Origin: Cyanophora paradoxa CCMP329
Taxonomy: Eukaryota; Plantae; Glaucophyta
Direction of reading: 5' to 3'
DNA length: 52,072 nt
Assembly (NCBI GenBank): GCA_004431415.1
Contig: QPMI01000539.1
Location: 1 to 52,072 of the forward strand
Positions 11,031 to 51,250 of this stretch are shown here, piece after piece. A program made the translations under genes and the position numbers. A model generated the notes under the pieces. That model had not been told where the DNA came from. It did not search any database and saw only the letters and a program-made list of their open reading frames with translations. The number at the start of each line of letters is the position of its first letter. Position 1 is the first letter of the stretch.

Positions 11031-11084
11031 TTCGATTCGTGATCACTGATCATGAGCGTGATGATCTCTTGTCATTCAATTTAA

Positions 11085-13320: not shown

Positions 13321-13354
13321 TGATCAGTGATCATGATCATCATGAGCACTACAC

Positions 13355-21420: not shown

Positions 21421-21714
21421 GTAGAGCCGCGATCGGCCGAGCTCTGTGCAGGGGGGGCAAGGGGGGGAGGGGCGGAGCGGACGGGGGTACGGATCAAGGT
21501 GAGCGTCCGGTATCGCCCTACCCTCGGCGGCAGCGGCCCCCTGCGCAGAGCTCGGCCGATTACGGGGCGAGAGAGAGGGCGAGAACAGGCAGAGGGGTAC
21601 GCACCTGTGCGGCCGCCGATCATAGAGCCGCTATCGGCCGAGCTCTGTGCAGGGGGAGAAAGAGGGGGAGGGCGGAGCGGGCGGGGGTACGGATCAGGAA
21701 GCGTCCGGCATCGC
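21421..21714 (+). repeat. 1.5 units of the ~200-bp palindromic repeat, truncated at the duplication junction
   Basis: Matches 35181-35474, then switches to unique sequence. Confidence 0.9.
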
Positions 21715-21994
21715 GCACCCTCTCGACCCGGTCCAACTTTTTTTTGATTTTCCGAGAGTCCGCCCAGCTCGCCATTTGAGGTTCACAGAACGTTTCATGC
21801 AACGGCCGTGGCCCGTGAGTGCGCCCGAACCTCTGCGTTCGCGATCGGCGCCCGAACCCCGGGCGGCGCCGCGCCGGCGCGGTGCCACGGTGGACCGTCG
21901 ACCGACCGTCGGACGTCGAGGCGTCGTCGACGCCGGACGAGCGGCGAGCGCGCGATTTTTTTCAAGCCTTTGCCCCGCGCTGCCGGCGCCGCCG

Positions 21995-24215: not shown

Positions 24216-24406
24216 GACGAGGCGCGCAAGGAAAAAAAAACCGCACCGATCCCGGGTACGCGTCCCCCACCCCTCTAATATAATTCAAATACAATTCAAA
24301 TTCGGTACGAGATATATATGTTATATAACGCCCTGCGCAGGCCACAGGGGTACGTATATATACACACACATACAAGGGCAAGGCGCGAGGCGCGGCGCGC
24401 GCCGGC

Positions 24407-25018
24407 TCACGCGCTCGGCGCGGCGCCGTCTCGATCGGGCGGGGAGAGCCAGGCGGGATCGACGAAGCGCGCGCAGAGGGCCCGCGGGAGGGCCGGGTCC
24501 AGCCCCGCGGCGGCCTCGGCGAGCCGCGCCGCGTAGGCCTCGCGACCGGCCTCGTAGAGGCGCCGGTGCGCCGCCGCGAGCGGCACGATCTCGAGGCCCG
24601 GGTCGGCGCGGCAGAGGGGGCACCGGAGCGGCGCGATCGGGAGGAGGCAGCCGAGGCAGAAGACGTGCCCGCACCCGAGGCGCGTCGGGCGGCACGGGAG
24701 CTGGAGGCAGACGGCGCACACGGCGTCGTCGTCGAGCGCGGCGCGCGCGGCGGGGCGCCACAGGTTGCTCGTGCACGTCCAGGCGACGTGGGCGGCGCGG
24801 CCGACCGCCTCGTAGCGCGCCAGGGCGCCGGCGTCGCGGGTCGGGTCGCCCCCGGCGGGCGCCTCGACGATCTCGCTCACGATGCGGCTGGACTTGACGC
24901 CGAGCGCGAGCGGCGCGGCGATCACGCCCCGGGCGGCGTCGTAGGCGTGCCCGTCCAGATACTTCCACCGTCCGAGGTCGTAGGTGCGCTCGGGCGCGGG
25001 CGCAGCGGCAGAGGCCAT
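24407..25018 (-). CDS. C3HC4 RING-finger protein (putative E3 ubiquitin ligase), 203 aa
   Basis: CAVC-x11-CGHVFCLGC-x8-CPLCR canonical RING-HC. Confidence 0.9.
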   Translation of the reverse strand: MASAAAPAPERTYDLGRWKYLDGHAYDAARGVIAAPLALGVKSSRIVSEIVEAPAGGDPTRDAGALARYEAVGRAAHVAWTCTSNLWRPAARAALDDDAVCAVCLQLPCRPTRLGCGHVFCLGCLLPIAPLRCPLCRADPGLEIVPLAAAHRRLYEAGREAYAARLAEAAAGLDPALPRALCARFVDPAWLSPPDRDGAAPSA

Positions 25019-25622
25019 TCCGAGGGTGCTGGCGGGGGGTACGGGGGGGAGCCGGGCCGGTGTGGGGCACCCCTCTACCTCCTAGGAGAATTCCCCGGGG
25101 GGTATTTAGCCGTTTGACCTCCCCCTCCCCCCCCGTACCCCCCCCCTCACCTTGCCCCGCTACCCCCCAATCCCTCCCTTCTCTCCCTCCTTCCCCTCTA
25201 CGCTCTTGCCCCCTTCCCCTCACGCCATCCCCCAGAGGGACGGGATTGGAGGACACGACACCATCACGGGAGGCGACGGCGGCGGCGACGGGAGGGGAGG
25301 CCAGTAGCCCAACCTACTGGGGCTGGCAAGCTAGCTAGATACGAAACCCTCGAACCTTTCGTTCATTTTGCATCGTTTCTAAAACACAGCATGCGACGAT
25401 CCTCAGTAGTATCTAGTCGGAGAGATGTATTGGGCGATGTGAAACTCATTGTAGTTGTACATGTGTTGTGTGCGAATGCAAGAGATTGAAATCTCCCTTG
25501 CCCCGCTCTGCGCTCTTGCCCCCTTCCCCCCCCCCACCCCACCCCACCCCCTCCATCCCCTCCCCTCTCGCCGATTCGGCCCAACGGACCGAATCGAGCG
25601 ACTCGGCGGCCGGCGGCGCTCC

Positions 25623-25632
25623 AACGCATAAA
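25623..25632 (+). promoter_or_regulatory. AACGCATAAA TATA-like motif upstream of the primase-helicase
   Basis: Identical 10-mer also lies upstream of TFIIB and GIY-YIG on their coding strands. Confidence 0.55.
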
Positions 25633-25674
25633 AGAGAGGCGCCATGCGGTCGGGGCGTCAGTCTCGACTGCACG

Positions 25675-31600: not shown

Positions 31601-31786
31601 GTGGACGGCGCGGCGCGGCTCCTGCCCGAGGACCTCGCGCGCCCGCGCGTCGCCCGCGGGCCGCGCTCGTGCGGGGCGAAGATGCTCCTCTTCGTACCCC
31701 GCTCCACCTTTCAGCACTTTGGCGTACCCCTCTTGGCCCTTCCCCCCCGCCCCGCCCCGGCACCTACCCCCGCTCCCCCTGCGTGA
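25675..31786 (+). CDS. ~2000-aa fusion: archaeo-eukaryotic primase (AEP) + Zn fingers + UL9/origin-binding-protein-like SF2 helicase + unknown C-terminus (several apparent sequencing frameshifts)
   Basis: AEP motif I FNVFDFD (~26197), motif II FSGLKGFHVY (~26428), motif III VLDLAPFRVNSGCR. Zn-like CPHGRDH...HCYSLRC and CWSCGH...CGAAAC. Helicase TIFVRAETGSGKT (~28500), RVLYVTAGR, CTVQSGRRL-FDVVIVDE (~28850), VIVADAD, YIACST, NYAMPQGTDF, FQLVRRRR follow the order of herpes UL9 motifs (recalled: VVRAPMGSGKT, YDVLVLDE, QSLGRVR). Several frame breaks are repaired by the sister copy. Confidence 0.85.
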
Positions 31787-31997
31787 ATGCGAAATTCGAT
31801 GCGCGGCCTCGCCGAGTCCTTTGAAAGCGCGCCGCTGCGTTTTTGCTTTCTCCCGACTTGGTTTTTTTTTGCCCGCCGCTCTTTCGCTCGAATCGGGCCC
31901 TCGGCGTCGATAAAAGCCCTCGCCCCGCGCCGCTGCGCTCACTCTCTTCTCCTCCTCTTTCGCAGGTCACGAACATTAACTGGACTCTACGGCGACG

Positions 31998-33809
31998 ATG
32001 GCCACCAACGCAAACCTCGCCACGATGACCGCTGCCGGCGCGCCCCGCCTCGTCGAGAAACCCTTTGTCCACGGCGCCGCGGAGAGCGAGTTCTGCAAAC
32101 GGATGGAATCCCTCCCGGCCGACCTGTCCGAGGCGATCCTGAACTACCTCGGGCGCGAGGACCGCCTCAAGATGCTCACCGTGTGCCAGCAGTCCCGCTC
32201 CTTTGCGATCGGCACCTCGGACGTCTCCAGCGGCTGGTTCGACGCCCTCGCCGTCGACGACGCGCTCGCCCTGCTGCTCGGAGGGCCCGGCGCGTCGCGC
32301 GGCGCCCGCCTCCGTCTCATCGCGGGGCGCGGTCGCGGGGCGGAGATCCCGATCCCGTCGCGCCTCGGCGGCCTCGACGCGACCTTTGCCCTCCCGACAG
32401 AGCCCGGGAGCGAGGGCCGCTGGGTGTGCATCCTCTTCCCCCCGGCGGCGGCGGCGGCGGCGGCCGAGGACCTCGCCCCGCGAGGCGCCATCGTCCGCTA
32501 CGGGCCGGGCGGGTTCGGCGACGCCCTGCAGATCCCGGCCGGGTTCCCCATCCGCGACTTTGCTCGCGGTTCCGTCTCCATTGCCGGCGACGGGACGATC
32601 GTGCTCGGCGGCGAGCGCGGCTGGCTCGTCTGGTCCGCCGACGGCGGCGTCTCGACCGTCGACGTCGGCGCGGCGGTCGCCGGCGTGGTGGCGTGCCGCC
32701 CCTCTCCCGACGCCTCGCGCGTCGCGATCTGCAGCGTCGCCGGCGACGGCGGCTCCGCGGGCGGCCGCGTCCTCGTCCGCTTCGTGGGCTCTGGCGAGTC
32801 TGCAGAGGGCGCCGCCGCGGCGCCCGCGGCCGACGCCGGCCCCCTGCACTCGACAGCGGCGCGCGCGCGGCTCTCCCACGAGCTCGCCGAGGTGGACGGC
32901 TCCGGGGACCCCTCGGCCCTCGGCGACTGGAGCGACGTGCCCCTGCACGAGTGCGACGCGAGCCTGACGTGGAACGCGCGCGGCAACGCCGTGCTGGTGC
33001 GGGTCAAGGTGTTGCGCAGCGGTATGGAGATGGGCGGTGCGGACGAAGTCGACATGATGGAGGACGATTCCAGCGTCGACGAACCCGCCGCCCGCGAGGA
33101 GGCCTTTGTCGAGTTCATCGCATCGGTGCGGCTCTCGGGCGGCGCTGCGCGCCAGGGCTGGTGGATCGTCTGCGGCGCCGAGCCCGCAGAGGCCTTTGCC
33201 GTCGGTCTGGGCGAGAACTGGCTCCTCCACGCGGCTCGGAACGTGGGCAGCATCCGGAGCGCGTCCATGTACATGTACTACCTCGCTGGCAGCGGCGCTG
33301 GTCGCCCCACCATGATCGAGCTGCACATGCCCTGCGAGGGCAAGTCGTACGGCTGCGTCACGCCCGTCGGCGACTGGAACTTCATCTACCAGGCCGCCGG
33401 CCAGTTCGAGTTCGAAGGAACCGGCGTCGATCGCCCCTTTCTCGTCTCCGTGACGCCCTACGCCCGCGACCTGGAGTATTTCGAGGTACCCGTGGCCAGC
33501 GGCCTGCTGGACGCGCGCTCCATCCGCCCGCTGGGAGCCGTCGGACTGCACGGCGTGGCGGCGCTCGCGTTCGGAGAGGACCAGGACGCCCCCGCGCCGT
33601 TCAGCGTCGTCCGGTACATCCAGTGGTCGGAGATCGGGAGGCTGACGGGTCAGGGCGGCCCGTTTGCGGCGTCGATCAGCACCCATCTGCAGCACAACAC
33701 GTTTAAGCCGACCTGCGAGTGGCTGCGCGACCGCTACTGCACCGTCGAAGGCGAACGGCACAACTACACGCTCACGTTCTTCCCCGGCGACTCGCAGCCT
33801 ACCGTATAG
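31998..33809 (+). CDS. F-box protein with beta-strand-rich C-terminus, 603 aa
   Basis: N-terminal ESLPADLSEAILNYLGREDRLKMLTVCQ fits the F-box consensus LPxxxxxxILxYLxxxDxxxxxxVC; intact ORF. Confidence 0.75.
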   Translation: MATNANLATMTAAGAPRLVEKPFVHGAAESEFCKRMESLPADLSEAILNYLGREDRLKMLTVCQQSRSFAIGTSDVSSGWFDALAVDDALALLLGGPGASRGARLRLIAGRGRGAEIPIPSRLGGLDATFALPTEPGSEGRWVCILFPPAAAAAAAEDLAPRGAIVRYGPGGFGDALQIPAGFPIRDFARGSVSIAGDGTIVLGGERGWLVWSADGGVSTVDVGAAVAGVVACRPSPDASRVAICSVAGDGGSAGGRVLVRFVGSGESAEGAAAAPAADAGPLHSTAARARLSHELAEVDGSGDPSALGDWSDVPLHECDASLTWNARGNAVLVRVKVLRSGMEMGGADEVDMMEDDSSVDEPAAREEAFVEFIASVRLSGGAARQGWWIVCGAEPAEAFAVGLGENWLLHAARNVGSIRSASMYMYYLAGSGAGRPTMIELHMPCEGKSYGCVTPVGDWNFIYQAAGQFEFEGTGVDRPFLVSVTPYARDLEYFEVPVASGLLDARSIRPLGAVGLHGVAALAFGEDQDAPAPFSVVRYIQWSEIGRLTGQGGPFAASISTHLQHNTFKPTCEWLRDRYCTVEGERHNYTLTFFPGDSQPTV

Positions 33810-34259
33810 TACGCTGCACGTGTGACCCGCTAGCGCTGAGCGGCGCACCGTGCACTCTCGTGTGCGTTTTTCTCCCGCGCCGCCGATTCTCAGAGTCTTC
33901 TCGTTCGATATCGATACTAGTACTATGATAGCTATATAGTGTCTTCTGTGGTTCACATGTACATGCGATTAATCCAAGTTTGTTTTGCGTGCTCCTTTGC
34001 GCCACGGTGGGCCGGGGGCGCGGGGCCGGGGCGGGCGAGGGCAGATGGACGGCCGCGGGGCCCCAAGTGAGCGGGGCTGGCCATGGGGGGCGGCGGGTGG
34101 GGGGCGAGGGGGTACCCTCTGGCGCACCGAGTTGGTTGAGCGCAGCAATGTAGAGGGGCCCGATTCAAACAAAAGGGTCCTCTGGTCTCCCAAAACGACG
34201 AGCAGGTGCGCGATGCGGCCATTCTTTCACATCGTCAAGAACCGAGAACAAGCTCAAGT

Positions 34260-34829
34260 ATGGCCGCCGCCCAGCCCTGCCAGCACCCTCGTCGCAGCGT
34301 CCTGATCGACATGGGAGAGCTGGTCAGCGACTTTATCCACTACAACTACGACGACGAGGACCGCAACCTCTACGACAGCGACATCGTCGCCCTCGCGACC
34401 AAGGCCAAGGGCGGCAAGGTCCCCGCGCGCGAGACGGACGACGCGCTCCAGACGCTCCGGCCGACCGCGGAGCGCATCCTCCCCATCGTGACGGGCCTGT
34501 TCGCGGCGAGCGCCAAAAAGTATTCGGAGGGTCTCGTCCAACTCGAGAACGTGCTCGGGCGCGCCTTTGCGGACCGCGTCGACGCGATCTTGGCCCCGCG
34601 CGCACGCGCCGCCCAGGGCCCGCTGGCCACCTCCTCCGATCTAGATCTGGCGTACGTCGTCTTTCCCGTGGAGCTCTGGTTCGAGCTGCTGTCGTGCCAG
34701 GGAGTCGACATTTTGCACCTGGACCTGTACGAGCGCGTCGTCCTCGGGATGGTCCCCCTTTTCCTCACGATGCTCCGCACCGGCAAGATTCGCGCCGCCG
34801 CCGGCAATGTTCTGTCGGCGATCTCGTGA
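34260..34829 (+). CDS. Hypothetical protein (189 aa, helical)
   Basis: Intact ORF with protein-like composition (MAAAQPCQHPRRSVLIDMGELVSDF...); no family recognised. Confidence 0.7.
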   Translation: MAAAQPCQHPRRSVLIDMGELVSDFIHYNYDDEDRNLYDSDIVALATKAKGGKVPARETDDALQTLRPTAERILPIVTGLFAASAKKYSEGLVQLENVLGRAFADRVDAILAPRARAAQGPLATSSDLDLAYVVFPVELWFELLSCQGVDILHLDLYERVVLGMVPLFLTMLRTGKIRAAAGNVLSAIS

Positions 34830-35180
34830 GCAGAGAGTATATTGTGCCGAGCGCATCAAAAGTGCGTGGAGTTTTTTGTGCACGTGTACATGTGCGGTGT
34901 GGGACTGAGAATCGAACCGAGACGCGCGCACGCGCGCGTGCTCTCGTTTCCGGCTTTACGCATAACCGTGGGAGCCAGCTCGAGCTAGTGGACGTACAGG
35001 CTCAATGCACGCGGGGCTCTCGAGTGGGGTCGCTGCAGTTTGGCGCGCGCGGCGCCGGCGCCGGCCCCAGAGCGCGCGTGAGGGCATTTTCGTGATCAAG
35101 AATGTTTTTTTTCTCTTTCAAACAATCGACATGCGGTTGCGAGGTGCCTGGGGGATTTTCGAACCCTGCCGCCGTCGCCT

Positions 35181-38100
35181 CGTAGAGCCGCGATCGGCCG
35201 AGCTCTGTGCAGGGGGGGCAAGGGGGGAGGGGCGGAGCGGACGGGGGTACGGATCAAGGTGAGCGTCCGGTATCGCCCTACCCTCGGCGGCAGCGGCCCC
35301 CTGCGCAGAGCTCGGCCGATTACGGGGCGAGAGAGAGGGCGAGAACAGGCAGAGGGGTACGCACCTGTGCGGCCGCCGATCATAGAGCCGCTATCGGCCG
35401 AGCTCTGTGCAGGGGGAGAAAGAGGGGGAGGGCGGAGCGGGCGGGGGTACGGATCAGGAAGCGTCCGGCATCGCCCTACCCTCGGCGGCAGCGGCCCCCT
35501 GCGCAGAGCTCGGCCGATTTACGGGACAAAGGGCGCGAGAACTAAGCAGAGGGGTACGCACTCTCCCGACGCCGCTCATAGAGCCGCGATCGGCCGAGCT
35601 CTGTGCAAGGGGGGCAAGGGGGAGAGGGGCGGAGCGGGCGGGGTACGGATCAGGAAGCGTCCGGCATCGCCCTACCCTCGGCGGCAGCGGCCCCCTGCGC
35701 AGAGCTCGGCCGATTACGGGACGAGAGCGAGGGCGAGAACAGACAGAGGGGTACGCACCGCTGCCGCCGCCGCTCATAGAGCCGCGATCGGCCGAGCTCT
35801 GTGCAGGGGGGGCAAGGGGGAGAGGGGCGGAGCGGACGGGGGTACGGATCAGGAAGCGTCCGGTATCGCCCTACCCTCGGCGGCAGCGGCCCCCTGCGCA
35901 GAGCTCGGCCGATTACGGGGCGAGAGAGAGGGCGAGAACAGGCAGAGGGGTACGCACCTGTGCGGCCGCCGATCATAGAGCCGCTATCGGCCGAGCTCTG
36001 TGCAGGGGGAGAAAGAGGGGGAGGGCGGAGCGGGCGGGGGTACGGATCAGGAAGCGTCCGGCATCGCCCTACCCTCGGCGGCAGCGGCCCCCTGCGCAGA
36101 GCTCGGCCGATTTACGGGACAAAGGGCGCGAGAACTAAGCAGAGGGGTACGCACTCTCCCGACGCCGCTCATAGAGCCGCGATCGGCCGAGCTCTGTGCA
36201 AGGGGGGCAAGGGGGAGAGGGGCGGAGCGGGCGGGGTACGGATCAGGAAGCGTCCGGCATCGCCCTACCCTCGGCGGCAGCGGCCCCCTGCGCAGAGCTC
36301 GGCCGATTACGGGACGAGAGCGAGGGCGAGAACAGACAGAGGGGTACGCACCGCTGCCGCCGCCGCTCATAGAGCCGCGATCGGCCGAGCTCTGTGCAGG
36401 GGGGGCAAGGGGGAGAGGGGCGGAGCGGACGGGGGTACGGATCAGGAAGCGTCCGGTATCGCCCTACCCTCGGCGGCAGCGGCCCCCTGCGCAGAGCTCG
36501 GCCGATTAGGGGGCGAGGTAGACAGAGAGGGGTACGCACCTCTGCCGCCGCCGCTCATAGAGCCGCGATCGGCCGAGCTCTGTGCAGGGGGAGGAAGAGG
36601 AGGGGGGGGGGAGCGGGCGGGGGTACGGATCAGGAAGCGTCCGGCACCGCGCAGCCCTGGCGGCAGCAGTCCCTGCGCAGAGCTCGGCCGATTAGGGGGC
36701 GAGGTAGACAGAGAGGGGTACGCACCTCTGCCGCCGCCGCTCATAGAGCCGCTTTCGGCCGAGCTCTGTGCAGGGGAAGGAAGAGGGGGAGGGGGGGAGC
36801 GGGCGGGGTACGGACCAAGGTGAGCGTCCGGTATCGCACCCTACCCTCGGCGGCAGCGGCCCCCTGTGCGCAGAGCTCGGCCGATTACGGGACGAGAGAG
36901 AGGGTGAGAAATAGACAGAGGGGTACGCACCGCTGCCGCCGCCGATCATAGAGCCGCTTTCGGCCGGGCTCTGTGCAGGGGAAGGAAGAGGGGGAGGGGC
37001 GGAGCGGGCGGGGGTACGGATCAGGAAGCGTCCGGCACCGCGCAGCCCTTGGCGGCAGCAGTCCCTGCGCAGAGCTCGGCCGATTAGGGGACGAGGTAGA
37101 CAGAGAGGGGTACGCACCTCTGCCGCCGCCGCTCATAGAGCCGCGATCGGCCGAGCTCTGTGCAGGGGGAGAAGAGGGGGGAAGGGGCGGAGCGGGCGGG
37201 GGGTACTGATCAGGAAGCGTCCGGCACCGCGCAGCCCTTGGCGGCAGCAGCCCCTGCGCAGAGCTCGGCCGATCACGGGACGAGGTAGACAGAGAGGGGT
37301 ACGCACCTCTGCCGCCGCCGCTCATAGAGCCGCGATCGGCCGAGGGCATTTTCGTGATCAAGAATGTTTTTTTTCTCTTTCAAACAATCGACATGCGGTT
37401 GCGAGGTGCCTGGGGGATTTTCGAACCCTGCCGCCGTCGCCTCGTAGAGCCGCGATCGGCCGAGCTCTGTGCAGGGGGGGCAAGGGGGGGAGGGGCGGAG
37501 CGGACGGGGGTACGGATCAAGGTGAGCGTCCGGTATCGCCCTACCCTCGGCGGCAGCGGCCCCCTGCGCAGAGCTCGGCCGATTACGGGGCGAGAGAGAG
37601 GGCGAGAACAGGCAGAGGGGTACGCACCTGTGCGGCCGCCGATCATAGAGCCGCTATCGGCCGAGCTCTGTGCAGGGGGAGAAAGAGGGGAGGGCGGAGC
37701 GGGCGGGGGTACGGATCAGGAAGCGTCCGGCATCGCCCTACCCTCGGCGGCAGCGGCCCCTGCGCAGAGCTCGGCCGATTTACGGGACAAAGGGCGCGAG
37801 AACTAAGCAGAGGGGTACGCACTCTCCCGACGCCGCTCATAGAGCCGCGATCGGCCGAGCTCTGTGCAAGGGGGCAAGGGGAGAGGGGCGGAGCGGGCGG
37901 GGTACGGATCAGGAAGCGTCCGGCATCGCCCTACCCTCGGCGGCAGCGGCCCCCTGCGCAGAGCTCGGCCGATTACGGGACGAGAGCGAGGGCGAGAACA
38001 GACAGAGGGGTACGCACCGCTGCCGCCGCCGCTCATAGAGCCGCGATCGGCCGAGCTCTGTGCAGGGGGGCAAGGGGGAGAGGGGCGGAGCGGACGGGGG

Positions 38101-40550
38101 TACGGATCAGGAAGCGTCCGGTATCGCCCTACCCTCGGCGGCAGCGGCCCCCTGCGCAGAGCTCGGCCGATTACGGGACGAGAGAGAGAGGCGAAAAACG
38201 GACAGAGGGGTACGCACCGCTGCCGCCGCCGCTCATAGAGCCGCGATCGGCCGAGCTCTGTGCAGGGGGGGCAAGGGGGAGAGGGGCGGAGCGGACGGGG
38301 GTACGGATCAGGAAGCGTCCGGTATCGCCCTACCCTCGGCGGCAGCGGCCCCCTGCGCAGAGCTCGGCCGATTACCGGACGAGAGCGAGGGCGAGAACAG
38401 ACAGAGGGGTACGCACCGCTGCCGCCGCCGCTCATAGAGCCGCGATCGGCCGAGCTCTGTGCAGGGGGGCAAGGGGGAGAGGGGCGGAGCGGGCGGGGTA
38501 CGGGCCAAGGTGAGCGTCCGGTATCGCGGCCTACCCTCGGCGACAGCGGCCCCCTGCGCAGAGCTCGGCCGATTACCGGACGAGAGAGAGGGCGAGAACA
38601 GACAGAGGGGTACGCACCGCTGCCGCCGCCGCTCATAGAGCCGCGATCGGCCGAGCTCTGTGCAGGGGGGGCAAGGGGGAGAGGGGCGGAGCGGGCGGGG
38701 TACGGACCAAGGTGAGCGTCCGGTATCGCGCCCTACCCTCGGCGGCAACGGCCCCCTGCGCAGAGCTCGGCCGATTACGGGACGAGAGAGAGGGCGAGAA
38801 CAGACAGAGGGGTACGCACCGCTGCCGCCGCCGATCACAGAGCCGCTATCGGCCGAGCTCTGTGCAGGTGGAGAAAGAGGGGGAGGGCGGAGCGGGCGGG
38901 GGTACGGATCAGGAAGCGTCCGGCATCGCCCTACCCTCGGCGGCAGCGGCCCCCTGCGCAGAGCTCGGCCGATTTACGGGACAAAGGGCGCGAGAACTAA
39001 GCAGAGGGGTACGCACTCTCCCGACGCCGCTCATAGAGCCGCGATCGGCCGAGCTCTGTGCAAGGGGGGCAAGGGGGAGAGGGGCGGAGCGGGCGGGGTA
39101 CGGATCAGGAAGCGTCCGGCATCGCCCTACCCTCGGCGGCAGCGGCCCCCTGCGCAGAGCTCGGCCGATTACGGGACGAGAGCGAGGGCGAGAACAGACA
39201 GAGGGGTACGCACCGCTGCCGCCGCCGCTCATAGAGCCGCGATCGGCCGAGCTCTGTGCAGGGGGGCAAGGGGGAGAGGGGCGGAGCGGACGGGGGTACG
39301 GATCAGGAAGCGTCCGGTATCGCCCTACCCTCGGCGGCAGCGGCCCCCTGCGCAGAGCTCGGCCGATTACGGGACGAGAGAGAGAGGCGAAAAACGGACA
39401 GAGGGGTACGCACCGCTGCCGCCGCCGCTCATAGAGCCGCGATCGGCCGAGCTCTGTGCAGGGGGGGCAAGGGGGAGAGGGGCGGAGCGGACGGGGGTAC
39501 GGATCAGGAAGCGTCCGGTATCGCCCTACCCTCGGCGGCAGCGGCCCCCTGCGCAGAGCTCGGCCGATTACCGGACGAGAGCGAGGGCGAGAACAGACAG
39601 AGGGGTACGCACCGCTGCCGCCGCCGCTCATAGAGCCGCGATCGGCCGAGCTCTGTGCAGGGGGGGCAAGGGGGAGAGGGGCGGAGCGGGCGGGGTACGG
39701 GCCAAGGTGAGCGTCCGGTATCGCGGCCTACCCTCGGCGACAGCGGCCCCCTGCGCAGAGCTCGGCCGATTACCGGACGAGAGAGAGGGCGAGAACAGAC
39801 AGAGGGGTACGCACCGCTGCCGCCGCCGCTCATAGAGCCGCGATCGGCCGAGCTCTGTGCAGGGGGGGCAAGGGGGAGAGGGGCGGAGCGGGCGGGGTAC
39901 GGACCAAGGTGAGCGTCCGGTATCGCGCCCTACCCTCGGCGGCAACGGCCCCCTGCGCAGAGCTCGGCCGATTACGGGACGAGAGAGAGGGCGAGAACAG
40001 ACAGAGGGTACGCACCGCTGCCGCCGCCGATCACAGAGCCGCTATCGGCCGAGCTCTGTGCAGGTGGAGAAAGAGGGGAGGGCGGAGCGGGCGGGGTACG
40101 GATCAGGAAGCGTCCGGCATCGCCCTACCCTCGGCGGCAGCGGCCCCCTGCGCAGAGCTCGGCCGATTTACGGGACAAAGGGCGCGAGAACTAAGCAGAG
40201 GGGTACGCACTCTCCCGACGCCGCTCATAGAGCCGCGATCGGCCGAGCTCTGTGCAAGGGGGGCAAGGGGGAGAGGGGCGGAGCGGGCGGGGGTACGGAT
40301 CAGGAAGCGTCCGGCCCTTGGCGGCGGCAGTCCCTGCGCAGAGCTCGGCCGATTACGGGACGAGGTAGACAGAGAGGGGTACTCACCTCTGCCGCCGCCG
40401 CTCATAGAGCCGCTATCGGCCGAGCTCTGTGTAGGGGGAGGAAGAGGGGAAGGGGGGAGCGGGCGGGGGTACGGACCAAGGTGAGCGTCCGGTATCGCCC
40501 TACCCTCGGCGGCAGCGGCCCCCTGCGCAGAGCTCGGCCGATTACGGGAC
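35181..40550 (+). repeat. ~200-bp tandem array (roughly 26 units) with internal inverted repeats and higher-order structure
   Basis: Unit catagagccgcgatcggccgagctctgtgcagggg...cccctgcgcagagctcggccgat...gaggggtacgcaccgctgccgccgccgct. Periods of ~593 and ~1197 bp; array restart at ~37342 duplicates flank 35080-35180. Confidence 0.95.
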
Positions 40551-40884
40551 AAGGGTGCGAGCGTGGGCAGCCATAGGGGTACGTAAGGTTTCGCTACGGC
40601 GGAAACGACAGATCCGGCAAAGGTCGAGCTCGTATCGGGCGGCCGTGCACGGGCATCTCACACGCGCCCGGCAAGTCGATCCGCGCGCCGACGCCGCCCG
40701 CCACCGGGAAGCCCGCACCGTACCCCCAAGCGCCAGAAAAAGGACCGATTCGCGCGACTCGGTCCCGACAAACGCATAAAGGGCCTCGCCCGCCGCCGTC
40801 GCGGTACTGCGGGCCGCCCCACCGCGCCCCTGATACGCAGCACATCGACAGCGCGCGCACCGACTCGCTGAGCGGGGGTGGAAC

Positions 40885-41333
40885 ATGTGCCGCGAGGGCC
40901 AGCTGGTCACGACGCGCGACGGGGACGTGGTGTGCGATGCCTGCGGCGCGGCCGAGGCGGTCGTCGGGGCCCTGGGGGGCAGCGAGAAGCCGGGGGCCGA
41001 CGAGAGCCCGCCCGCGTCGCCCCGCGAGCCCTCGCGGTCCGAGGTCCGCATGGGGCGGCTCCTGGAGGGCGCAGCGTCGGCGCTGGGCCTCGCCGAGGCG
41101 GCGGTCCACGAGGCGCGGCTGCTGCTGGCGGACCGCGGGCTGCTGAGGGGCAGGAAGAGCGAGATTATCGTCGCCGGCGCGCTCTACTACGCGGCGGCCT
41201 CGGCCGGCGCCCCGCGCACCGTCGACGACGCGCTCGGCTGGCACCCCGACCTGCGCACCCGCCGCGCGGCGCTCGTCAGGATGGTCCGCGCGATCCACCG
41301 CCGCCGCGGCGTCGGGCGCATCCCCCGCGCGGC
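40885..41333 (+). pseudogene. 3'-truncated duplicate of the TFIIB-like gene
   Basis: Identical to 43249 onward up to ...GRIPRA, then jumps back into the array (2364-bp duplication). Confidence 0.88.
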
Positions 41334-42914
41334 GGCCGATTTACGGGACAAAGGGCGCGAGAACTAAGCAGAGGGGTACGCACTCTCCCGACGCCGCTCA
41401 TAGAGCCGCGATCGGCCGAGCTCTGTGCAAGGGGGGCAAGGGGGAGAGGGGCGGAGCGGGCGGGGTACGGATCAGGAAGCGTCCGGCATCGCCCTACCCT
41501 CGGCGGCAGCGGCCCCCTGCGCAGAGCTCGGCCGATTACGGGACGAGAGCGAGGGCGAGAACAGACAGAGGGGTACGCACCGCTGCCGCCGCCGCTCATA
41601 GAGCCGCGATCGGCCGAGCTCTGTGCAGGGGGGGCAAGGGGGAGAGGGGCGGAGCGGACGGGGTACGGATCAGGAAGCGTCCGGTATCGCCCTACCCTCG
41701 GCGGCAGCGGCCCCCTGCGCAGAGCTCGGCCGATTACGGACGAGAGAGAGAGGCGAAAAACGGACAGAGGGGTACGCACCGCTGCCGCCGCCGCTCATAG
41801 AGCCGCGATCGGCCGAGCTCTGTGCAGGGGGGCAAGGGGGAGAGGGGCGGAGCGGACGGGGGTACGGATCAGGAAGCGTCCGGTATCGCCCTACCCTCGG
41901 CGGCAGCGGCCCCCTGCGCAGAGCTCGGCCGATTACCGGACGAGAGCGAGGGCGAGAACAGACAGAGGGGTACGCACCGCTGCCGCCGCCGCTCATAGAG
42001 CCGCGATCGGCCGAGCTCTGTGCAGGGGGGCAAGGGGGAGAGGGGCGGAGCGGGCGGGGTACGGGCCAAGGTGAGCGTCCGGTATCGCGGCCTACCCTCG
42101 GCGACAGCGGCCCCTGCGCAGAGCTCGGCCGATTACCGGACGAGAGAGAGGGCGAGAACAGACAGAGGGGTACGCACCGCTGCCGCCGCCGCTCATAGAG
42201 CCGCGATCGGCCGAGCTCTGTGCAGGGGGGGCAAGGGGGAGAGGGGCGGAGCGGGCGGGGTACGGACCAAGGTGAGCGTCCGGTATCGCGCCCTACCCTC
42301 GGCGGCAACGGCCCCCTGCGCAGAGCTCGGCCGATTACGGGACGAGAGAGAGGGCGAGAACAGACAGAGGGGTACGCACCGCTGCCGCCGCCGATCACAG
42401 AGCCGCTATCGGCCGAGCTCTGTGCAGGTGGAGAAAGAGGGGGAGGGCGGAGCGGGCGGGGGTACGGATCAGGAAGCGTCCGGCATCGCCCTACCCTCGG
42501 CGGCAGCGGCCCCCTGCGCAGAGCTCGGCCGATTTACGGGACAAAGGGCGCGAGAACTAAGCAGAGGGGTACGCACTCTCCCGACGCCGCTCATAGAGCC
42601 GCGATCGGCCGAGCTCTGTGCAAGGGGGGCAAGGGGGAGAGGGGCGGAGCGGGCGGGGGTACGGATCAGGAAGCGTCCGGCCCTTGGCGGCGGCAGTCCC
42701 TGCGCAGAGCTCGGCCGATTACGGGACGAGGTAGACAGAGAGGGGTACTCACCTCTGCCGCCGCCGCTCATAGAGCCGCTATCGGCCGAGCTCTGTGTAG
42801 GGGAGGAAGAGGGGAAGGGGGAGCGGGCGGGGGTACGGACCAAGGTGAGCGTCCGGTATCGCCCTACCCTCGGCGGCAGCGGCCCCCTGCGCAGAGCTCG
42901 GCCGATTACGGGAC
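41334..42914 (+). repeat. ~200-bp array, duplicated block (~8 units)
   Basis: Same order of unit variants as ~38967-40550. Confidence 0.93.
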
Positions 42915-43248
42915 AAGGGTGCGAGCGTGGGCAGCCATAGGGGTACGTAAGGTTTCGCTACGGCGGAAACGACAGATCCGGCAAAGGTCGAGCTCGTATC
43001 GGGCGGCCGTGCACGGGCATCTCACACGCGCCCGGCAAGTCGATCCGCGCGCCGACGCCGCCCGCCACCGGGAAGCCCGCACCGTACCCCCAAGCGCCAG
43101 AAAAAGGACCGATTCGCGCGACTCGGTCCCGACAAACGCATAAAGGGCCTCGCCCGCCGCCGTCGCGGTACTGCGGGCCGCCCCACCGCGCCCCTGATAC
43201 GCAGCACATCGACAGCGCGCGCACCGACTCGCTGAGCGGGGGTGGAAC

Positions 43249-43923
43249 ATGTGCCGCGAGGGCCAGCTGGTCACGACGCGCGACGGGGACGTGGTGTGCG
43301 ATGCCTGCGGCGCGGCCGAGGCGGTCGTCGGGGCCCTGGGGGGCAGCGAGAAGCCGGGGGCCGACGAGAGCCCGCCCGCGTCGCCCCGCGAGCCCTCGCG
43401 GTCCGAGGTCCGCATGGGGCGGCTCCTGGAGGGCGCAGCGTCGGCGCTGGGCCTCGCCGAGGCGGCGGTCCACGAGGCGCGGCTGCTGCTGGCGGACCGC
43501 GGGCTGCTGAGGGGCAGGAAGAGCGAGATTATCGTCGCCGGCGCGCTCTACTACGCGGCGGCCTCGGCCGGCGCCCCGCGCACCGTCGACGACGCGCTCG
43601 GCTGGCACCCCGACCTGCGCACCCGCCGCGCGGCGCTCGTCAGGATGGTCCGCGCGATCCACCGCCGCCGCGGCGTCGGGCGCATCCCCCGCGCGCCCGA
43701 CTACGTCGACGCGCTCGCCCAGCGCGTGGGGCTGGACGGGGCGGACCTGCGGGCGGCGCGGGAGTACGCGGAGCGGCACCGAGACTCGGGAAGGAGCCCG
43801 ATCGTCGTCGCCGCGGCGGCGTTGGTGGAGGCGGGCGGCGCTTCGACGCGCGAGGCCGCGCGCGCGGCCGGCATTACGACCGTTGGCATCCAGGTCTGCA
43901 TCAAGGCGCTCGCCGCCGCCTAG
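43249..43923 (+). CDS. Compact TFIIB-like transcription initiation factor, 224 aa
   Basis: Zn-ribbon remnant GDVVCDACG; cyclin repeat 1 LRGRKSEIIVAGALYYAA...APRTVDD; repeat 2 SGRSPIVVAAAAL...TREAARAAGIT. Confidence 0.88.
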   Translation: MCREGQLVTTRDGDVVCDACGAAEAVVGALGGSEKPGADESPPASPREPSRSEVRMGRLLEGAASALGLAEAAVHEARLLLADRGLLRGRKSEIIVAGALYYAAASAGAPRTVDDALGWHPDLRTRRAALVRMVRAIHRRRGVGRIPRAPDYVDALAQRVGLDGADLRAAREYAERHRDSGRSPIVVAAAALVEAGGASTREAARAAGITTVGIQVCIKALAAA

Positions 43924-44757: not shown

Positions 44758-45366
44758 CTAAGCCGCGTCCGAGGACGGGCTCTCGCCCCCTGCGTCGCCG
44801 CCGTCGGGGTTGACGTGGACGGCGATCTGCGTGCCGCCGCCGGCGCTCCACTCGACGGCGAGCTTCTTCATGGCCTCGATGCGCTTTGCAGAGGATCCGG
44901 TGCGCCCCTTGACCGCCTGCTCGTAACCCTGGGCCAGGCTGCGGTTGGGAAACGGCGCAGCGACGGCGAGGAGCCGCCAGGGCCCGCGGCTCTTGGTGAA
45001 CGAGCCGCGGATGGTGCCGCGCGAGTGCTCCTTGAACCGCCGCGCGAGGCTCGCCGTCTCGCCGCAGTAGAACATCCGGCCGTTGTGCAGCAGGTACACG
45101 ACGTGCTGCTTCTCAAACTGGTGGTGGAACGGCCGGGCCTTGCCGCCGCCGCCACCACCGCCGCCGCCTCCCGCCGCGGCCTTTGCGCCGACGCCGACGC
45201 CGCCGTCGCCCCGCTCCCCGTCGGCGCTCCCCTTGTCCGCGTCGGAATTCGAATCCTCGTTCGTCTCGCCGCCCCCGTCCCGCCGCTCCTGCCGCCCCTC
45301 GCCCCCGCCAACGGCGTGCGCAGACCCTGGTGCGGCCGCGGCCAGCGACGTCGGCTCCGCCTCCAT
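44758..45366 (-). CDS. GIY-YIG endonuclease (SLX1-like), 202 aa
   Basis: VVYLL...FYCGET..LARRFKEH...GSFTKSRGPW...AQGYEQAVK carries the GIY/YIG, Arg, His, PW and catalytic Glu motifs. Confidence 0.9.
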   Translation of the reverse strand: MEAEPTSLAAAAPGSAHAVGGGEGRQERRDGGGETNEDSNSDADKGSADGERGDGGVGVGAKAAAGGGGGGGGGGKARPFHHQFEKQHVVYLLHNGRMFYCGETASLARRFKEHSRGTIRGSFTKSRGPWRLLAVAAPFPNRSLAQGYEQAVKGRTGSSAKRIEAMKKLAVEWSAGGGTQIAVHVNPDGGDAGGESPSSDAA

Positions 45367-45459: not shown

Positions 45460-48400
45460 TTATGCGTTCAGCAGATGCCCTGCCGGTACAGGAGCCTGCG
45501 GCGACGGCGGGGGAGGCGGCGGCGGCGGGGCGGGGCTGGGCTTGAACCGCTTCGGCGCCCCCCCGCTCGAGGGCTCGACGCGGGCGACGGGGCGGAGGAT
45601 GCCGTCGGGCGGGCGCGCCGTGGGCGGCGCCGGTGCGCAGAGGAGGGCCGGAGGGCAGGGATGCGGGGGGCGCGGCGTGTCGGGTCGTGCGCGCCCGTCC
45701 ATCCCTCGCCGCTCCCCTGCCACGAGCCGTCGCCGACCCCGCTCCCATTTGCAGGATCGGAGCGCAGAGGGCCGGGGGGCGCCGCCCCTCAGCCAGGGGG
45801 CCGCGCCTTGGGCGGCCTCCCGCGCCGCCTCGCGGGCGGGGCGCCCCGCCCGCCGCCGCCGCCCCGCCGCGCGACGACGAGGAGGAAGAGGCCGGCGGCG
45901 GCGAGGACGCCGGCCGCGCAAAGCCCAGGAGCTCCAGCACCCGCTCGGCGCCGGTTCGGATCTCGACGGTGCCGTTGCGGCCCTCGTACTCGACTGGGAA
46001 GAGGGCGCTCACGCCCGTCCACTCGCGAGGTCCGCCCTCCTGGCTCGCCGTCCACGCCCGCCGAACCGCTTCAGCAGGACCAAGCGGGACTCGAACTCGC
46101 CGCTCGGCAGGTCGATCGTCTGGACGAGGCGCGCGTACACCACGTTGGGCAGCGGGCTCGCCGCGTGCGTCGCCAGCGCCGCCACCACCTGCCCCGCCGC
46201 GTACGGCGAGGCCGACCGCCAGCGCAGGTGGTAGAGGGGCGGCGGCGGCCCGCCGCGGGCGCGGCGACGGGGGCGGGAACGGCGCCGCCGCGGCCCGGCC
46301 CGGGGCCCCGCCGGCGGCTGAGGCCACGCCGGTGGCCGCCGCGGATGAGCCCTCGGGAACAGTAGCTCGCGTGGTGCTTGGCCCCGGCCGCGTTCTTGAA
46401 CGCCTCGCGGTGCGTCGGGGGCGGTAAAGGCGGGAGGGCGCGGGGCGCGGGGCGGGCGCGGTCTCACCCGGTCGCAGGGCTCGCAGTAGCGCTGCTCGGC
46501 GATCGCCAGCGCCCGCTCGACGGCATAGTCGGCGTCCCAGGGCCGTCGAGGGCCCCCCGCGCTGCCGGTCCGGCGCCGCTTGGCCTCTTCCGCGCCGGCC
46601 GAGCCGCCCCCGTCCCCCTCGTCCTCTTCCTCTTCCTCCTCCTCCTCTTCCTCTTCCTCTTCGCCAAGTCGAACGAGCTGGAGCTCCCGCCCTTGCCCGC
46701 CGGCTCCGGGCTCGTCGGCGGCGTCTGCGTCTGCGTCGCCGGCGCCGGCGCCGCCTCGCCCCCGTCCTCTTCCTCTTCCTCTTCTCGCGCCCCTCGTTCT
46801 CCTCCCTCGCCGCCTTGTCGCCGCGGCGCCCGCCGCCCGTCCCCGCCCTTGTTCCGCCCACCTCCTCGGCGCGCCGCGCGGGGCGCCGCCGGGCGGGGCG
46901 CGGGTCGGCCGTCGGCCCTCCAGGAGCGGCGGATCGAGCCCGTCGGGCTCTCCCGCGCGCGGCGCCTCTCTCCCCGTGCTTCAGCGCCAGCTGCTCGAGG
47001 TACGCCACCGCCGAGGCCGCCGCGCGCGCGCGGGCCGAGTAGTCGTAATTCTGCGTCGCAGTGATGACGCTGTGCCCCAGCAGCTTGGCTGCGCGGGGAG
47101 TCGCGGTGACGGCGGGCGCAGCGGCGGGGCGCGGGAGCGGGGTACGGCGCACCCGTCCCCTCGACGACGGCGGCGGCGGTGTCGCCGGAGATGCGGTTCG
47201 CGGCGGCCTCGTCCCGCACGTGCGTCGTGATGATGGCGCGGATGGCCTGCGCCGTCACCGGCACGCCCGTGTACTTTTCCGTCACCTGCGGTGCGTGAGT
47301 TTCTCCCCCTTCAGCCCGCCCGCCCCGCGCGCCTTTTTCACAAAGTTGCTCCAGCCGGCGTCGGAGAGGAGCGTTCCCGTCGGGCCGGTGAAGAGCCATC
47401 CCTCGTCGGCGGCGCCCGTCGTCGGCGGGAAGAGGAGGCGGCGGTAGCGCTCGACGTACAAGGTGAGCGGCTCCTGGACAAAACCGGGGATCGGAAAGGT
47501 CATCGCGCCCGCAGTCTTGGCCGTCTTGGACGAGAGGACCGGCTCGGCGCCCCCGACGTCGATTCTCATCTTTGTGAGCGCGATCGCCCACGCGCCCTGG
47601 TCCCGTCGGAGCGTGTGACCGATCCTGCGCAGGGCGCGCGGTGGCCATGGGGGCGGGGCGGGAGGGGCGGCGGAGTGGGGGTACGGCACCTGAGGCGGCG
47701 GACGATGCCGACGCGCGAGGGCGTCGAGACGAGGAGGGAGAGGAGGAGCCCCTCGCGGAGGGCGAGGGCCTTGTCGTACTCGAGCGGCGCACGCTCCGCC
47801 GCCTCGAGCGCGTCCAGCCGCGCCGAGAGGAGCGTCTCGAACGGCACCCAGTTCGGTCCGCGCTCGCGCCACTTGACCCCCTCGCGCTTCTCCTTTCTCA
47901 GCTGGGCGAGCAGGTTGCGGAGGCCGCGGGCGTGGGGCCCCTCGGAGCCCGACGCCGCGCCCGACGTGCGCGCGTGGACAAAGGCGTGGGCCTGGAGCGC
48001 CGCCTGCGTGTACCCCGCCAAGGTGGCCGCCTGCACCTTGCGCTCCCGCGGAGAAACGTGAGGAATCGCATCCACAGGTCGATGAAGTCGACGCGGGCGC
48101 CGGAGAAGAGGTCGAGCGTCGGGGCGCCGTCGATCTTCTCGCGGAGGGCGCAGTACCCCAGGAAGCGCAGCAGCGTCGTCCGCTCGTTGGCCAGCGTCGA
48201 GGAGCGCTCGACGGCGGCGCCGGGGCGGTCGGGGTTGAGGGCCCGGGTACGCCACTCTTCGTACGCGGCGAGCTGCGCCTTGAGCTCCCGCGACTGATCC
48301 TCCTCGCGCAGGCCGTACGGGGCGGCGCGCTCGGCCGACGGCTCCTCGGCGGCCTCGGCGTCGGAGCCCGCGTCGCCCGGCGCCGGCAGCGGCGGCGGCG

Positions 48401-48534
48401 GCGGCGAGCTCGAGGGAGAGGACGACGGGCCGGCGCCGGGATCGCTCCCCTCGCTGCCGGAGCTCGTCGAGCTCTCCCCGAGGTCGACGGCTCGAATCCC
48501 CGCGGCGGCGCCCGGCGGAGCCTGGCGGGACGCT

Positions 48535-48565
<31 letters not shown>

Positions 48566-50261
48566 GGGGCCGCTCCTCGGCGGGGAGGACCACGCGCTCG
48601 GGGTCCGGCAGGGCGTCGGCGTCAAAGAGCGTGATCGACGGGTCGAGGATCATGCTCTCCAGCATCGACCGGTACGCCTGGCGCTTCTCCGCGATAAACT
48701 TGGCGTTGTCCTTGGCGACGGCGTCTGACATGGGGCCCCCGGGGCGGTAGAACATCAGCTCGCCGTGCGCCAGCTCGTCCGACCACGAGAAGCCCGTCGC
48801 CACCTCCAGCGTCGCGCCCTCGGCGAACCAGAGGATCCCTGCCGAGGGCCCTTAAAGGGGCGCGGCGGGGTGGGCGCCGAGGGAGAGGCGCGCACACGGC
48901 CCGCACTGGTACCCGTCCACCTGGAGCCGCCCGCCGCTCGTCTCGTCCACGTACTGGTGCGCGGGAAACGCCGCCTTGGCCGCGTAGACGAGCGACGGGT
49001 CGCAGGGCTCGCCGAGCGAGTCCCAGTACCGCGTCTTCGCCCCGCCGAGCACGAGGAGGGTCCAGTGGCCGCCGCTCGCCGAGCGCTTCTCGGCCCCGCG
49101 GCGCACGAGGCTCGTCGAGACGGGGCAGATGACGGTGCCGCCCCTCGCCACGAGCGACAGTGCGCGCCGCTTACGGCGCTCCTCGCTCGCAGCCGCGTAC
49201 CGGCGGAGGACCGAGGCGAGGATGTCGACGCTCATCGGGTAGAGGGCCCGCACGCGGCCGTTGTTGGCCTTGCGCAGGATGAGGGTGAGCACGTTGGCGA
49301 TGTGCGTGTCCGTGAGCCACTCGCGCGCGCCAAAGATCGGGACGCGGCGCGCAGGCGGGACGGGCGCGGGAACGGCGGCGGCGGCGGCGACGGGGTCGGC
49401 GCCCTCGAGGACGAGCCGCTGGCGCTTGAAGTCGGCGAGGAGGCTCGCGTCGCGCCCCGGTAGGTCCTTCAGGAACATCTCCACGCCGAGCGCGCTGATG
49501 AAGCCCCAGGTGCGGGCAAAGCCGCGCGAGGCCTCGCCCTCGACCTCGGAGCCAAGGCCGGCGTACCGCGTCAGCGTCTGCGTGACGAGGCCGAAGCGCT
49601 CGCGGCCGATGCTCAGCGTCGTCACGTTCCAGCGGTGCGGCCCGTCCCGCGCGAGGTCGGGGAGGCGCTTCTCGATCTCTCGCCGCACGCAGTTTGTGTC
49701 GCGGGAGGAGCCGTAGAGGGCGTCGGCGAGCGAGGCCATCGGCACCCAGAGCTGCAGGTCCGGAACCTCGATCCGCTTGGCGCGCAGCGCGTACATGCGC
49801 TTGCCGCCGACGCGTATGACGTGCAGGTCGAGGCGCGCGAGGGTGCGGGGCCGGCGGCGCTCGTTGGCGGCGTAGAACGAGGCGGCGGCGGCGCGCTTGC
49901 GCTGCTCGTCCGTGACCTCCCAGGCCTCGGCGACCACGTCCAGCACGTAGCGCATCGCCACCATCCGCGGCGGCGACTCGGGCGTGCACTCGCGCCGGCG
50001 GACGGCGCCCAGGGCCTCGAGCAGCAGGATGGCGTTCTCGTCGGGCAGCGGCCGCGTCGGCACTCCGTAGCGCGCGGTGAGGAGGTCCTCGGCCTCGGCC
50101 TCGGGCCGTCGGGGTCGAGGCGCGGCTCGCCGAGGACGCGCGCCAGCTGGGCCGAGCACGCGGCGGGGCCCGCCGTCGTCGGGAGGACGACGAGGCGCTC
50201 CGGCCCCAGGGCCCGCGTACTCGACGAGCTCGTAGGCGTCGTGCACCGTCGGAAAGGACAT
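45460..50261 (-). CDS. Multi-exon gene: Bro-N-like domain(s) - Ulp1/SENP cysteine protease - tyrosine recombinase - acidic linker - C2HC zinc finger - unknown C-terminus (3' end uncertain)
   Basis: Protease: WLTDTHI, GGHWTLLVL, YWDSLG, LQVDGYQCGP|W. YR: STPSRVG (R), SSKT (K), AQAIRAI (R), LLGHS (H), QNYD (Y). Predicted introns 48895-48839, 47689-47625, 47332-47286 (GC-AG), 47152-47089 and 46467-46404 each restore the frame; a 1-bp G-run loss lies near 48045. Confidence 0.8.
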
Positions 50262-50791
50262 TGCGGCGGCGCAACCGATCGCGGGCGGCCGCGTGGGACG
50301 GGCCGCGGGGCAGCGGTGTGGGCCCCGCCAACTCTAGCCCCAAGGAGCAATGGGGCGCTTGGATTTATGTATCTGCCCTGCGCGATTGCGAGCTCGAAGT
50401 AGATAGGGGTACAGTTTTCGGTGCTCTCTGCAGTAAGGGTACAGGCACCGCCCTCTCGCCCTCCCCCCCCCCCCCCCCCCCCTTTTTTTTTGGGGGGACG
50501 GTCGCAGTCGGTTCATCCTGCACGCCACGATGAACAGTGTCACAGTGCTCGAGATTTCGTACCTGTTTTGATTTCAAATTCCCATCTTGGTTTTCAGGTT
50601 TCCCTTCAAAAAAGCTTTGTGAGCTTATAATTAAGCGATCGCAGCTCTAAATGTCTATCTCGAGTCAAATACAGAATAGAGCCCCACCGTGCTGCCATCT
50701 GTATCGTCAGGGAGATCTAGAGCTCGAGGCTATAGCTATAGCTAGTGGTCTGACGAGATCTATAGAGCGAACATCAACATTGATTATATCG

Positions 50792-51250
50792 ATGAGGCTT
50801 CTGTGCTCAGACGGCGAGACGGTCGTGTGCCCGGGGGCCCTGGTCGCTGACAGCGAGCTCCTTGCCGACGTTTCCGAGTGCTCAGATGCTCACACAGACG
50901 CCATCCCCATGCCCATCACATCGACAGTCATCCTCGCGGCGGGCATCGCCCTCAACGACCGCTCGGCCTCCCGACCTTTCGCCTCGCTCCAAGTTCCGCA
51001 CGGCGGGCCCGATTCGCGAGCGGCCCCCGCAATGGCCCTCATCGCCCGCCTCGGTGTCGCCGCAGAGTTTCTTCGCGCTCCAAAGCTCGCACACGCGTGC
51101 GCAAAGCTCTTTGAGGGCGCGATTACGCACGAGAAGGCTCTCGGGGAACTCTGGGAGGATCATGTTCGATTCGCGACCGGCGCCGCCCCGCAGCGGGTTC
51201 GGAAGCGCAAGATAGAGGAGACGGTCCCCTGTAAGAATCAGAGCGATTGA
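50792..51250 (+). CDS. SKP1-like (POZ/BTB) protein, intronless
   Basis: MRLLCSDGETVVC...SELLAD...IPMP.TSTVIL and LGVAAEFL..PKLAHACAK..EGAI resemble the SKP1 POZ and dimerisation motifs; divergent. Membership in the element is unknown. Confidence 0.75.
   Translation: MRLLCSDGETVVCPGALVADSELLADVSECSDAHTDAIPMPITSTVILAAGIALNDRSASRPFASLQVPHGGPDSRAAPAMALIARLGVAAEFLRAPKLAHACAKLFEGAITHEKALGELWEDHVRFATGAAPQRVRKRKIEETVPCKNQSD

Follow-up and report, generated by a model that had tools for sequence, protein, structure and literature searches.

A stretch of 52,072 nucleotides from the glaucophyte Cyanophora paradoxa CCMP329 (contig QPMI01000539.1, positions 1 to 52,072; hereafter the window) carries on its minus strand one spliced gene which almost certainly joins a clan CE protease to a tyrosine recombinase (YR). 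Several proteins of the window match C. paradoxa gene models in EukProt with complete or near-complete identity. Along the predicted protein, an N-terminal domain is followed by the protease, a linker, the YR, a zinc finger, a domain of about 110 amino acids (aa) and an AT-hook-like motif (Table). Comparison with relatives demonstrated the predicted gene structure, both putative domains with their catalytic residues, the presence of several copies and, among the relatives sampled, a single origin of the fusion. The first-pass annotation of this DNA had proposed such a fusion, and it is now borne out by five fused paralog models, by profile searches and by an independent contig (L001). Window exons were compared one at a time, while the junction-spanning searches and the fold prediction used database proteins of the paralogs.

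The fused frame depends on the first intron, the length of which is a multiple of three, and which splits a Trp codon and encloses an in-frame TAA (48852-48854). The mere existence of this intron is weak evidence, since chance alone often places a GT..AG pair around a stop: of stop triplets taken arbitrarily on the minus strand, 45% could be spanned by a frame-preserving GT..YAG of 45-70 nt, and 4% under a strict donor/acceptor pattern. Therefore, evidence from homology was needed. In fact, a gap exactly 19 codons long opens at this intron in the alignment of the window with the paralog P0012, which rules out a chance intron, and the motif Cys-Gly-x-Trp-x-Leu is continuous across the junction in P0012, P0013, P0015 and P0018, as well as in the bacterial protease SnCE1 (P0016 has an insertion at this point). 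The claim that splicing completes the helix of the catalytic Cys was thus confirmed. Nor can the TAA be explained by read-through or by a base error, since either would leave 19 extra residues in the catalytic helix, found in no relative. The three further introns which had been suggested, introns 2-4, were upheld as well by their phase, by stop-free exons and by the YR profile. They preserve the frame, and 3' of 48045 each exon is free of stops in the phase set by its intron; the two boundaries of intron 2 (47689 and 47626) are also where the aligned segments of P0013 break off; and the YR family profile spans the pieces of the window without a hole (profile positions 86-208, 207-287, 284-327 and 325-359).

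When an 88-aa piece of the core-binding domain was searched against 1.8 billion representatives, 20 matches were obtained, the top ones being the C. paradoxa models P0012, P0013, P0014, P0015, P0016 and P0018. Five of them (P0012, P0013, P0015, P0016 and P0018) hold protease and recombinase in one chain; these fused models lie at separate loci, with 43-94% identity over the core-binding domain. The paralogs of C. paradoxa go by the gene names tig00000269_g23672, tig00000836_g4710, tig00021535_g22231, tig00020538_g10388, tig00000179_g13065 and tig00000480_g1293. In addition, P0001 represents a second, near-identical copy of the fusion gene, and part of the region 50792-51190 is common to it. 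Stronger support than that of the five predicted models is given by L001, a 2.4-kb short-read Logan contig (run ERR10034898) with 68% GC and an intron style like that of the window. Seven GT-AG introns of 50-72 nt separate its eight exons, which contain zero stops and span the N-terminal domain, the His, Asp and Cys of the protease, and then the recombinase past its first catalytic Arg. No intron of L001 coincides with one of the window; that which follows the Cys is placed two codons before intron 1 of the window, and its length is not a multiple of three. As the frame of L001 is intact with different intron positions, the fused frame has been kept while the introns changed place.

The same observations bear on a regulated two-product gene, in which retention of intron 1 would give a short product lacking the recombinase, the fusion being a minor isoform or never made. 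The stop inside intron 1 would suit this arrangement, and the database models P0001 and P0002 do terminate within the protease. Nevertheless, retention would truncate the catalytic helix two residues past the Cys and leave the protease incomplete, the matching intron of L001 is shifted and not frame-preserving, and no promoter-like CATAAA occurs between the protease and recombinase domains, so that a two-product gene is very unlikely.

The protease of the window presents the His-Asp-Cys order together with an oxyanion Gln and a Trp after the His, all aligned to SnCE1 (first codon bases: Trp 49319, His 49067, Asp 49022, Gln 48923, Cys 48905). Asp, Gln and Cys are invariant in paralogs with just 36-60% identity across the protease. 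A profile of the protease copies matched, within the PDB, SnCE1 of Simkania (E 5.7e-9), XopD (7e-5) and NopD (1.5e-4), as well as ChlaDUB1, whereas the matches with Ulp1 and SENP1 (about 0.08) and with SENP8 were weak. The Pfam Peptidase_C48 cut-off (PF02902; 20.7 bits) was reached by no copy, the best being P0015 with 16 bits, and Pfam and PHROG scans of single window exons detected neither the protease nor the recombinase domain. Of the Ulp1/SENP identity originally given, the clan CE triad and profile stand; the nearest solved structures are SnCE1 and XopD, not Ulp1, and the label should be broadened to a putative clan CE protease of ubiquitin-like modifiers.

SnCE1 is a deSUMOylase by assay and combines the His-Asp-Cys triad with an oxyanion Gln and a gatekeeper Trp (PMC13125535). 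SnCE1, XopD, NopD and ChlaDUB have the His-Asp-Gln-Cys order and a near-identical Cys motif in common with the window protease, but they are secreted stand-alone effectors, whereas the window gene is nuclear, algal and recombinase-fused. Given the dual activity of the nearest solved relatives, SnCE1 and ChlaDUB1 (PMC13125535), the CE domain might be mainly an acetyltransferase, modifying chromatin or itself; however, the domain has kept its protease-type oxyanion Gln and gatekeeper Trp, and no positive evidence was obtained for acetylation, which makes this option highly improbable. Metagenome scans with P0015 also yielded CE proteases that stand alone and share the Cys motif; they are found on a chlamydia-like contig and on GC-rich eukaryote-like contigs (L010:9371-11470, L011, L013-L018), none of them beside a YR. 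It is possible that these contigs represent the source lineage of the fused domain; the C-terminal extension of the protease gave no significant alignment with the stand-alone proteases.

The recombinase is classified, from its sequence, as a divergent YR. A core-binding (SAM-like) domain precedes the catalytic one, and the catalytic set R-K-R-H-Y is intact in the window. The recombinase profile matched XerA (E 0.0013), and family members matched a PHROG integrase (1.7e-6) and XerD (2e-4). The failure to predict a YR fold had been named beforehand as a possible refutation. The AlphaFold model of P0015 has a mean predicted local distance difference test score (pLDDT) of 58, reaching about 90 in the core-binding domain and 77-88 in the protease sheet, and its top 43 Foldseek matches in the PDB are all CE-clan proteases or YRs (XerA, Cre), none of them significant alone. 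Word-indexed searches with two YR pieces, a metagenome scan with the YR alignment, and scans of viral contigs and of phages gave no matches.

As regards the reading frame, the protease was said to run on in frame into the YR. This is true through the part of the core-binding domain at 48311-48048, after which the frame switches at 48045-48047. Further switches form a compensating pair in the N-terminal domain (about 50208 and 50102-50117) or lie in the 3' third of the gene, where there are several, including two in the last exon near 46057 and 45866. The gene does not extend to 45460, as had been claimed: that position is the end of an open reading frame (ORF) in another frame, and the stop of the gene is at 45789-45791. 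The assembly is indel-rich. The duplicated segment pairs within the window differ by 45 gap openings over 7.4 kb, 15 over 4.5 kb and 11 over 2.4 kb, with 12, 2 and 0 substitutions, respectively, that is, by 3-6 gap openings per kb nearly without substitutions. Several false frameshifts are therefore expected in a gene of 4.5 kb, and the switches of the window are likely to be assembly errors; for the one at 48045-48047 this is the likely explanation, a real lesion being the alternative.

If the frame switches were real, the family could be one that no longer moves, consisting either of domesticated host genes (a deconjugase with the YR as its DNA-binding module) or of decaying methylated relics. 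The many spliceosomal introns, whose sites of gain vary between copies, would agree with this, as would the broken look of several copies and the fact that element ends were not found. Against it, all five checkable catalytic positions of the YR are retained, the near-identical copy P0001 exists, the gap openings between the window duplicates make several false frameshifts likely, and L001 is intact. A family without mobility is thus unlikely. The probable intron 5 interrupts a C2HC-type zinc finger, and the same finger is contiguous in P0016.

Table. Features of the fusion gene and its nearest neighbours (window positions).
Feature	Position	Strand	Basis or remark
ORF divergent to the fusion gene, SKP1-like by eye	50792..51190	+	no database match
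TATA-like CATAAA, about 100 nt 5' of ATG	50364..50369	-	8 found against 2.8 expected; putative role
Exon 1, N-terminal domain, about 300 aa	49347..50261	-	27-60% identity to paralogs; compensating frame switches inside
Exon 1, clan CE protease core	48896..49346	-	catalytic residues and alignment
Intron 1, 57 nt, GT-AG, phase 1, holds in-frame TAA	48839..48895	-	paralog alignment
Exon 2, remainder of catalytic Cys helix and helical extension kept in all paralogs	48654..48838	-	
Exon 2, Ala/Ser/Pro/acidic low-complexity linker, 114 aa, without Gly-Gly	48312..48653	-	
Exon 2, first part of YR core-binding (SAM-like) domain, same frame as protease	48048..48311	-	
Frame switch at G-run within recombinase	48045..48047	-	paralogs covering the site read straight through
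Exon 2, remaining core-binding domain and start of catalytic domain; first catalytic Arg 47715	47690..48045	-	
Intron 2, 65 nt, GT-AG	47625..47689	-	
Exon 3, YR catalytic domain, Lys 47527	47333..47624	-	
Intron 3, 47 nt, GC-AG, CTCAC branch-like site	47286..47332	-	
Exon 4, Gln 47249 in His slot of H-x-x-R, second catalytic Arg 47240	47153..47285	-	
Intron 4, 64 nt, GT-AG	47089..47152	-	
Exon 5, His 47074, nucleophile Tyr 47047; YR end near 46960	46468..47088	-	
Exon 5 after YR, acidic low-complexity stretch with more frame switches, then first half of zinc finger	within 46468..47088	-	
Probable intron 5, 64 nt, GT donor, non-standard GAG end	46404..46467	-	inferred
Last exon, second half of finger, conserved domain of about 110 aa (no family assigned), AT-hook-like RGRP, stop	45789..46403	-	
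GIY-YIG nuclease gene	44758..45366	-	Pfam E 5e-8
TFIIB-like gene, intronless	43249..43923	+	near-identical copy on another contig

The linker and the neighbouring genes have to be considered in connection with a further explanation, that of polyprotein self-processing. The first-pass annotation had mentioned that the integrase might process itself; here, a clan CE protease like adenain, I7 or pS273R would free itself from the recombinase or mature the structural proteins of a parent virus. Polintons and large DNA viruses indeed have genes for Ulp1-like maturation proteases among their hallmarks (PMC4981718), the African swine fever virus protease pS273R is among the Foldseek matches of the P0015 model, and the neighbourhood looks viral (primase-helicase, TFIIB, GIY-YIG, RING and F-box genes). 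Nevertheless, Gly-Gly is absent from the window linker and conserved nowhere in the linker across the family, the sequence profiles match deconjugases and not adenain or I7, and a capsid gene was not detected in the scanned ORFs, leaving the suggestion unsupported and self-processing quite unlikely. For the N-terminal domain, a BRO-N/KilA-like reading was not supported by the searches, and AlphaFold prediction of exon 1 from three sequences gave a pLDDT of 32.

The neighbouring genes constitute a set typical of virus-derived elements. The GIY-YIG gene may belong to the same element as the fusion gene, and the CATAAA hexamer is found 5' of the fusion, GIY-YIG, TFIIB and primase-helicase genes. 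Moreover, the exact 9-mer ACGCATAAA occurs at 2168, 25624, 40772 and 43136 (+) and at 45459 (-), 5' of the primase-helicase, TFIIB and GIY-YIG genes and, for the latter two, some 90-115 nt before the ATG; it might serve as the promoter of an element or simply be a common TATA box. The primase-helicase gene (25600-31000, +; second copy at 2200-7500) encodes a large AEP primase and a superfamily-2 helicase-like part, with Walker A and DE motifs, weak Pfam matches and many indels. A RING gene (24407-25018, -) and an F-box-like gene (31998-33809, +) have near-identical copies on other contigs, the RING and TFIIB copies being five gene numbers apart on tig00021583; together with the ORF judged SKP1-like by eye, they make up a small ubiquitin-ligase toolkit near the fusion. 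Overall, the fusion gene would probably encode the integrase of a mobile element present in several copies, with a virus or a Polinton-like virus (PLV) as its likely ancestor.

The rest of the window is highly repetitive. Segments 174-7509 and 23605-30973 (7.4 kb), as well as 17211-21722 and 30959-35483 (4.5 kb), are more than 99% identical, through recent duplication or as an assembly artefact, and a tandem duplication of 2.37 kb (38966-41331, 41333-43695) takes in the 5' part of the TFIIB gene. A satellite of approximately 200-bp units with higher-order structure occupies 35100-42950, with a short copy at 21320-21720. A foldback-like unit (8090-16585), with inverted arms of about 2.5 kb (98% identity in the core) and internal 20/40-bp repeats, seems to be inserted between two copies of the primase-helicase/F-box block; its arms enclose an AT-richer array of 348-bp units (11040-13350).

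Related YRs occur in the haptophyte Prymnesium polylepis and in metagenomes, with no such protease detected; several of these sequences are fragments, so that some of the genes may still include one. A branch of the tree sets the fused copies apart, in agreement with a fusion that arose once and a family that then expanded. An unfused relative (L003:11-5560) lies head to head with a second YR, beside a D5 primase-helicase; this second YR looks PLV-type by its motif and is also matched by the family profile (E 4e-10). A distant YR relative (L002:9122-12827, frameshifted there and continuous in P0033) is followed by OTU-like motifs (GDC, W and a final H) and a Tudor-like end, among DNA methylase, chromo and PHD genes; the OTU reading comes from the motifs, with no Pfam or PDB match.

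Ulp1- and OTU-type proteases accompany many transposons (MULE, Ginger1, Helitron, Crypton), in a role which has been guessed at since 2006 and is still unsettled. The closest counterpart is Ginger1, whose DDE transposases carry in-frame Ulp1 or OTU domains, proposed to work on SUMO or ubiquitin in transposition (PMC2836005). Like the window gene, Ginger1 places integrase and protease in one spliced protein; its integrase, however, is of the gypsy-like DDE type with a C-terminal protease, terminal inverted repeats (TIRs) and target-site duplications, whereas in the window gene an N-terminal protease precedes the integrase, which is a YR, and TIRs were not found. Among Cryptons of oomycetes, CryptonS encodes a C48 peptidase as "an additional protein" and CryptonF-2_PS one "in addition to a YR" (PMC3212892). 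These are therefore eukaryotic YR elements also encoding a C48 peptidase; in CryptonF-2_PS, a fusion of the two is possible. The C-terminal parts gave no Pfam match to GCR1_C, the CryptonF hallmark, and there was no Crypton among the 20 core-binding matches as far as their sources were looked up, no Crypton reference sequences having been compared. Reverse transcriptase and RNase H, expected of DIRS/Ngaro elements, had no match in the fused models or flanking ORFs.

The second YR of L003 gives a likeness to PLVs, which have been reported in Cyanophora, but the window gene has spliceosomal introns, neither capsid, ATPase nor TIR was found, and the proteases of PLVs are separate maturation enzymes. 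The fusion resembles Ginger1 in its working without being a Ginger1, and the tests made do not allow its assignment to the Cryptons, the DIRS elements or the PLVs. Neither an in-frame C48-YR protein nor the recombinase family of the window was described in the literature searched. The novelty claimed at first is to be limited in view of Ginger1 and of some Cryptons: the fusion is apparently the first of its kind for tyrosine recombinase integrases, while the pairing is known from other transposases.

Several points weigh against the interpretation of the gene as an active, protease-bearing integrase. The splicing and the fusion are known solely from genomic sequence and predicted models; the paralogs are such models, several of them mis-spliced or without the His, and the frame of the window copy is not continuous, with six or more switches. 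In the recombinase, the His slot of H-x-x-R holds Gln in the window and Lys or Arg in relatives. Sequence does not reveal the substrate of a CE-clan protein, and of five CE proteins from Simkania, four were inactive (PMC13125535). The branch separating the fused copies has a support of 88/100, below the 95% bootstrap mark. Finally, neither terminal repeats nor a target duplication were found around the gene, nor a capsid or packaging ATPase among the ORFs scanned, in a scan that was not exhaustive, within a window ending 1.8 kb upstream, and with divergent capsids able to escape Pfam.

On balance, a mobile-element integrase with a tethered deconjugase acting near recombination sites is favoured with moderate confidence. 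One mRNA, presumably spliced in vivo, would be translated into the N-terminal domain, CE protease, flexible linker, YR, zinc finger, further domain and AT-hook. The recombinase would bind the recombination sites of the element and excise or integrate it through a 3'-phosphotyrosine intermediate, which is established YR chemistry. The tethered protease might then strip SUMO, possibly ubiquitin or NEDD8, from neighbouring proteins involved in chromatin, repair or silencing, or else from the attached recombinase, allowing transposition to escape repression or proteolysis. Both the substrate and the purpose are inferred, and local removal of SUMO or NEDD8, as first suggested, is plausible. In this context, CpG methylation silences repeats and viral genes in C. 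paradoxa (PMC12344493), which gives a motive, although no proof, for a counter-silencing protease. A wider and doubtful proposal is that of an undescribed class of large virus-derived algal YR elements which would themselves encode primase-helicase, TFIIB, GIY-YIG, RING, F-box and SKP1-like proteins. On more than one occasion, their YR lineage would have taken up a protease of the ubiquitin family, from clan CE in Cyanophora and possibly of OTU type in L002, to counter silencing as a tethered enzyme.

These results expose a family of eukaryotic YRs, present in a glaucophyte, a haptophyte and metagenomes, which is missed by Pfam. Moreover, since YRs are unrelated to DDE transposases, the in-frame fusion is an independent case of transposase-protease pairing, and it suggests that the protease must act at the recombination site, an idea that is testable in a culturable alga with a known methylome.

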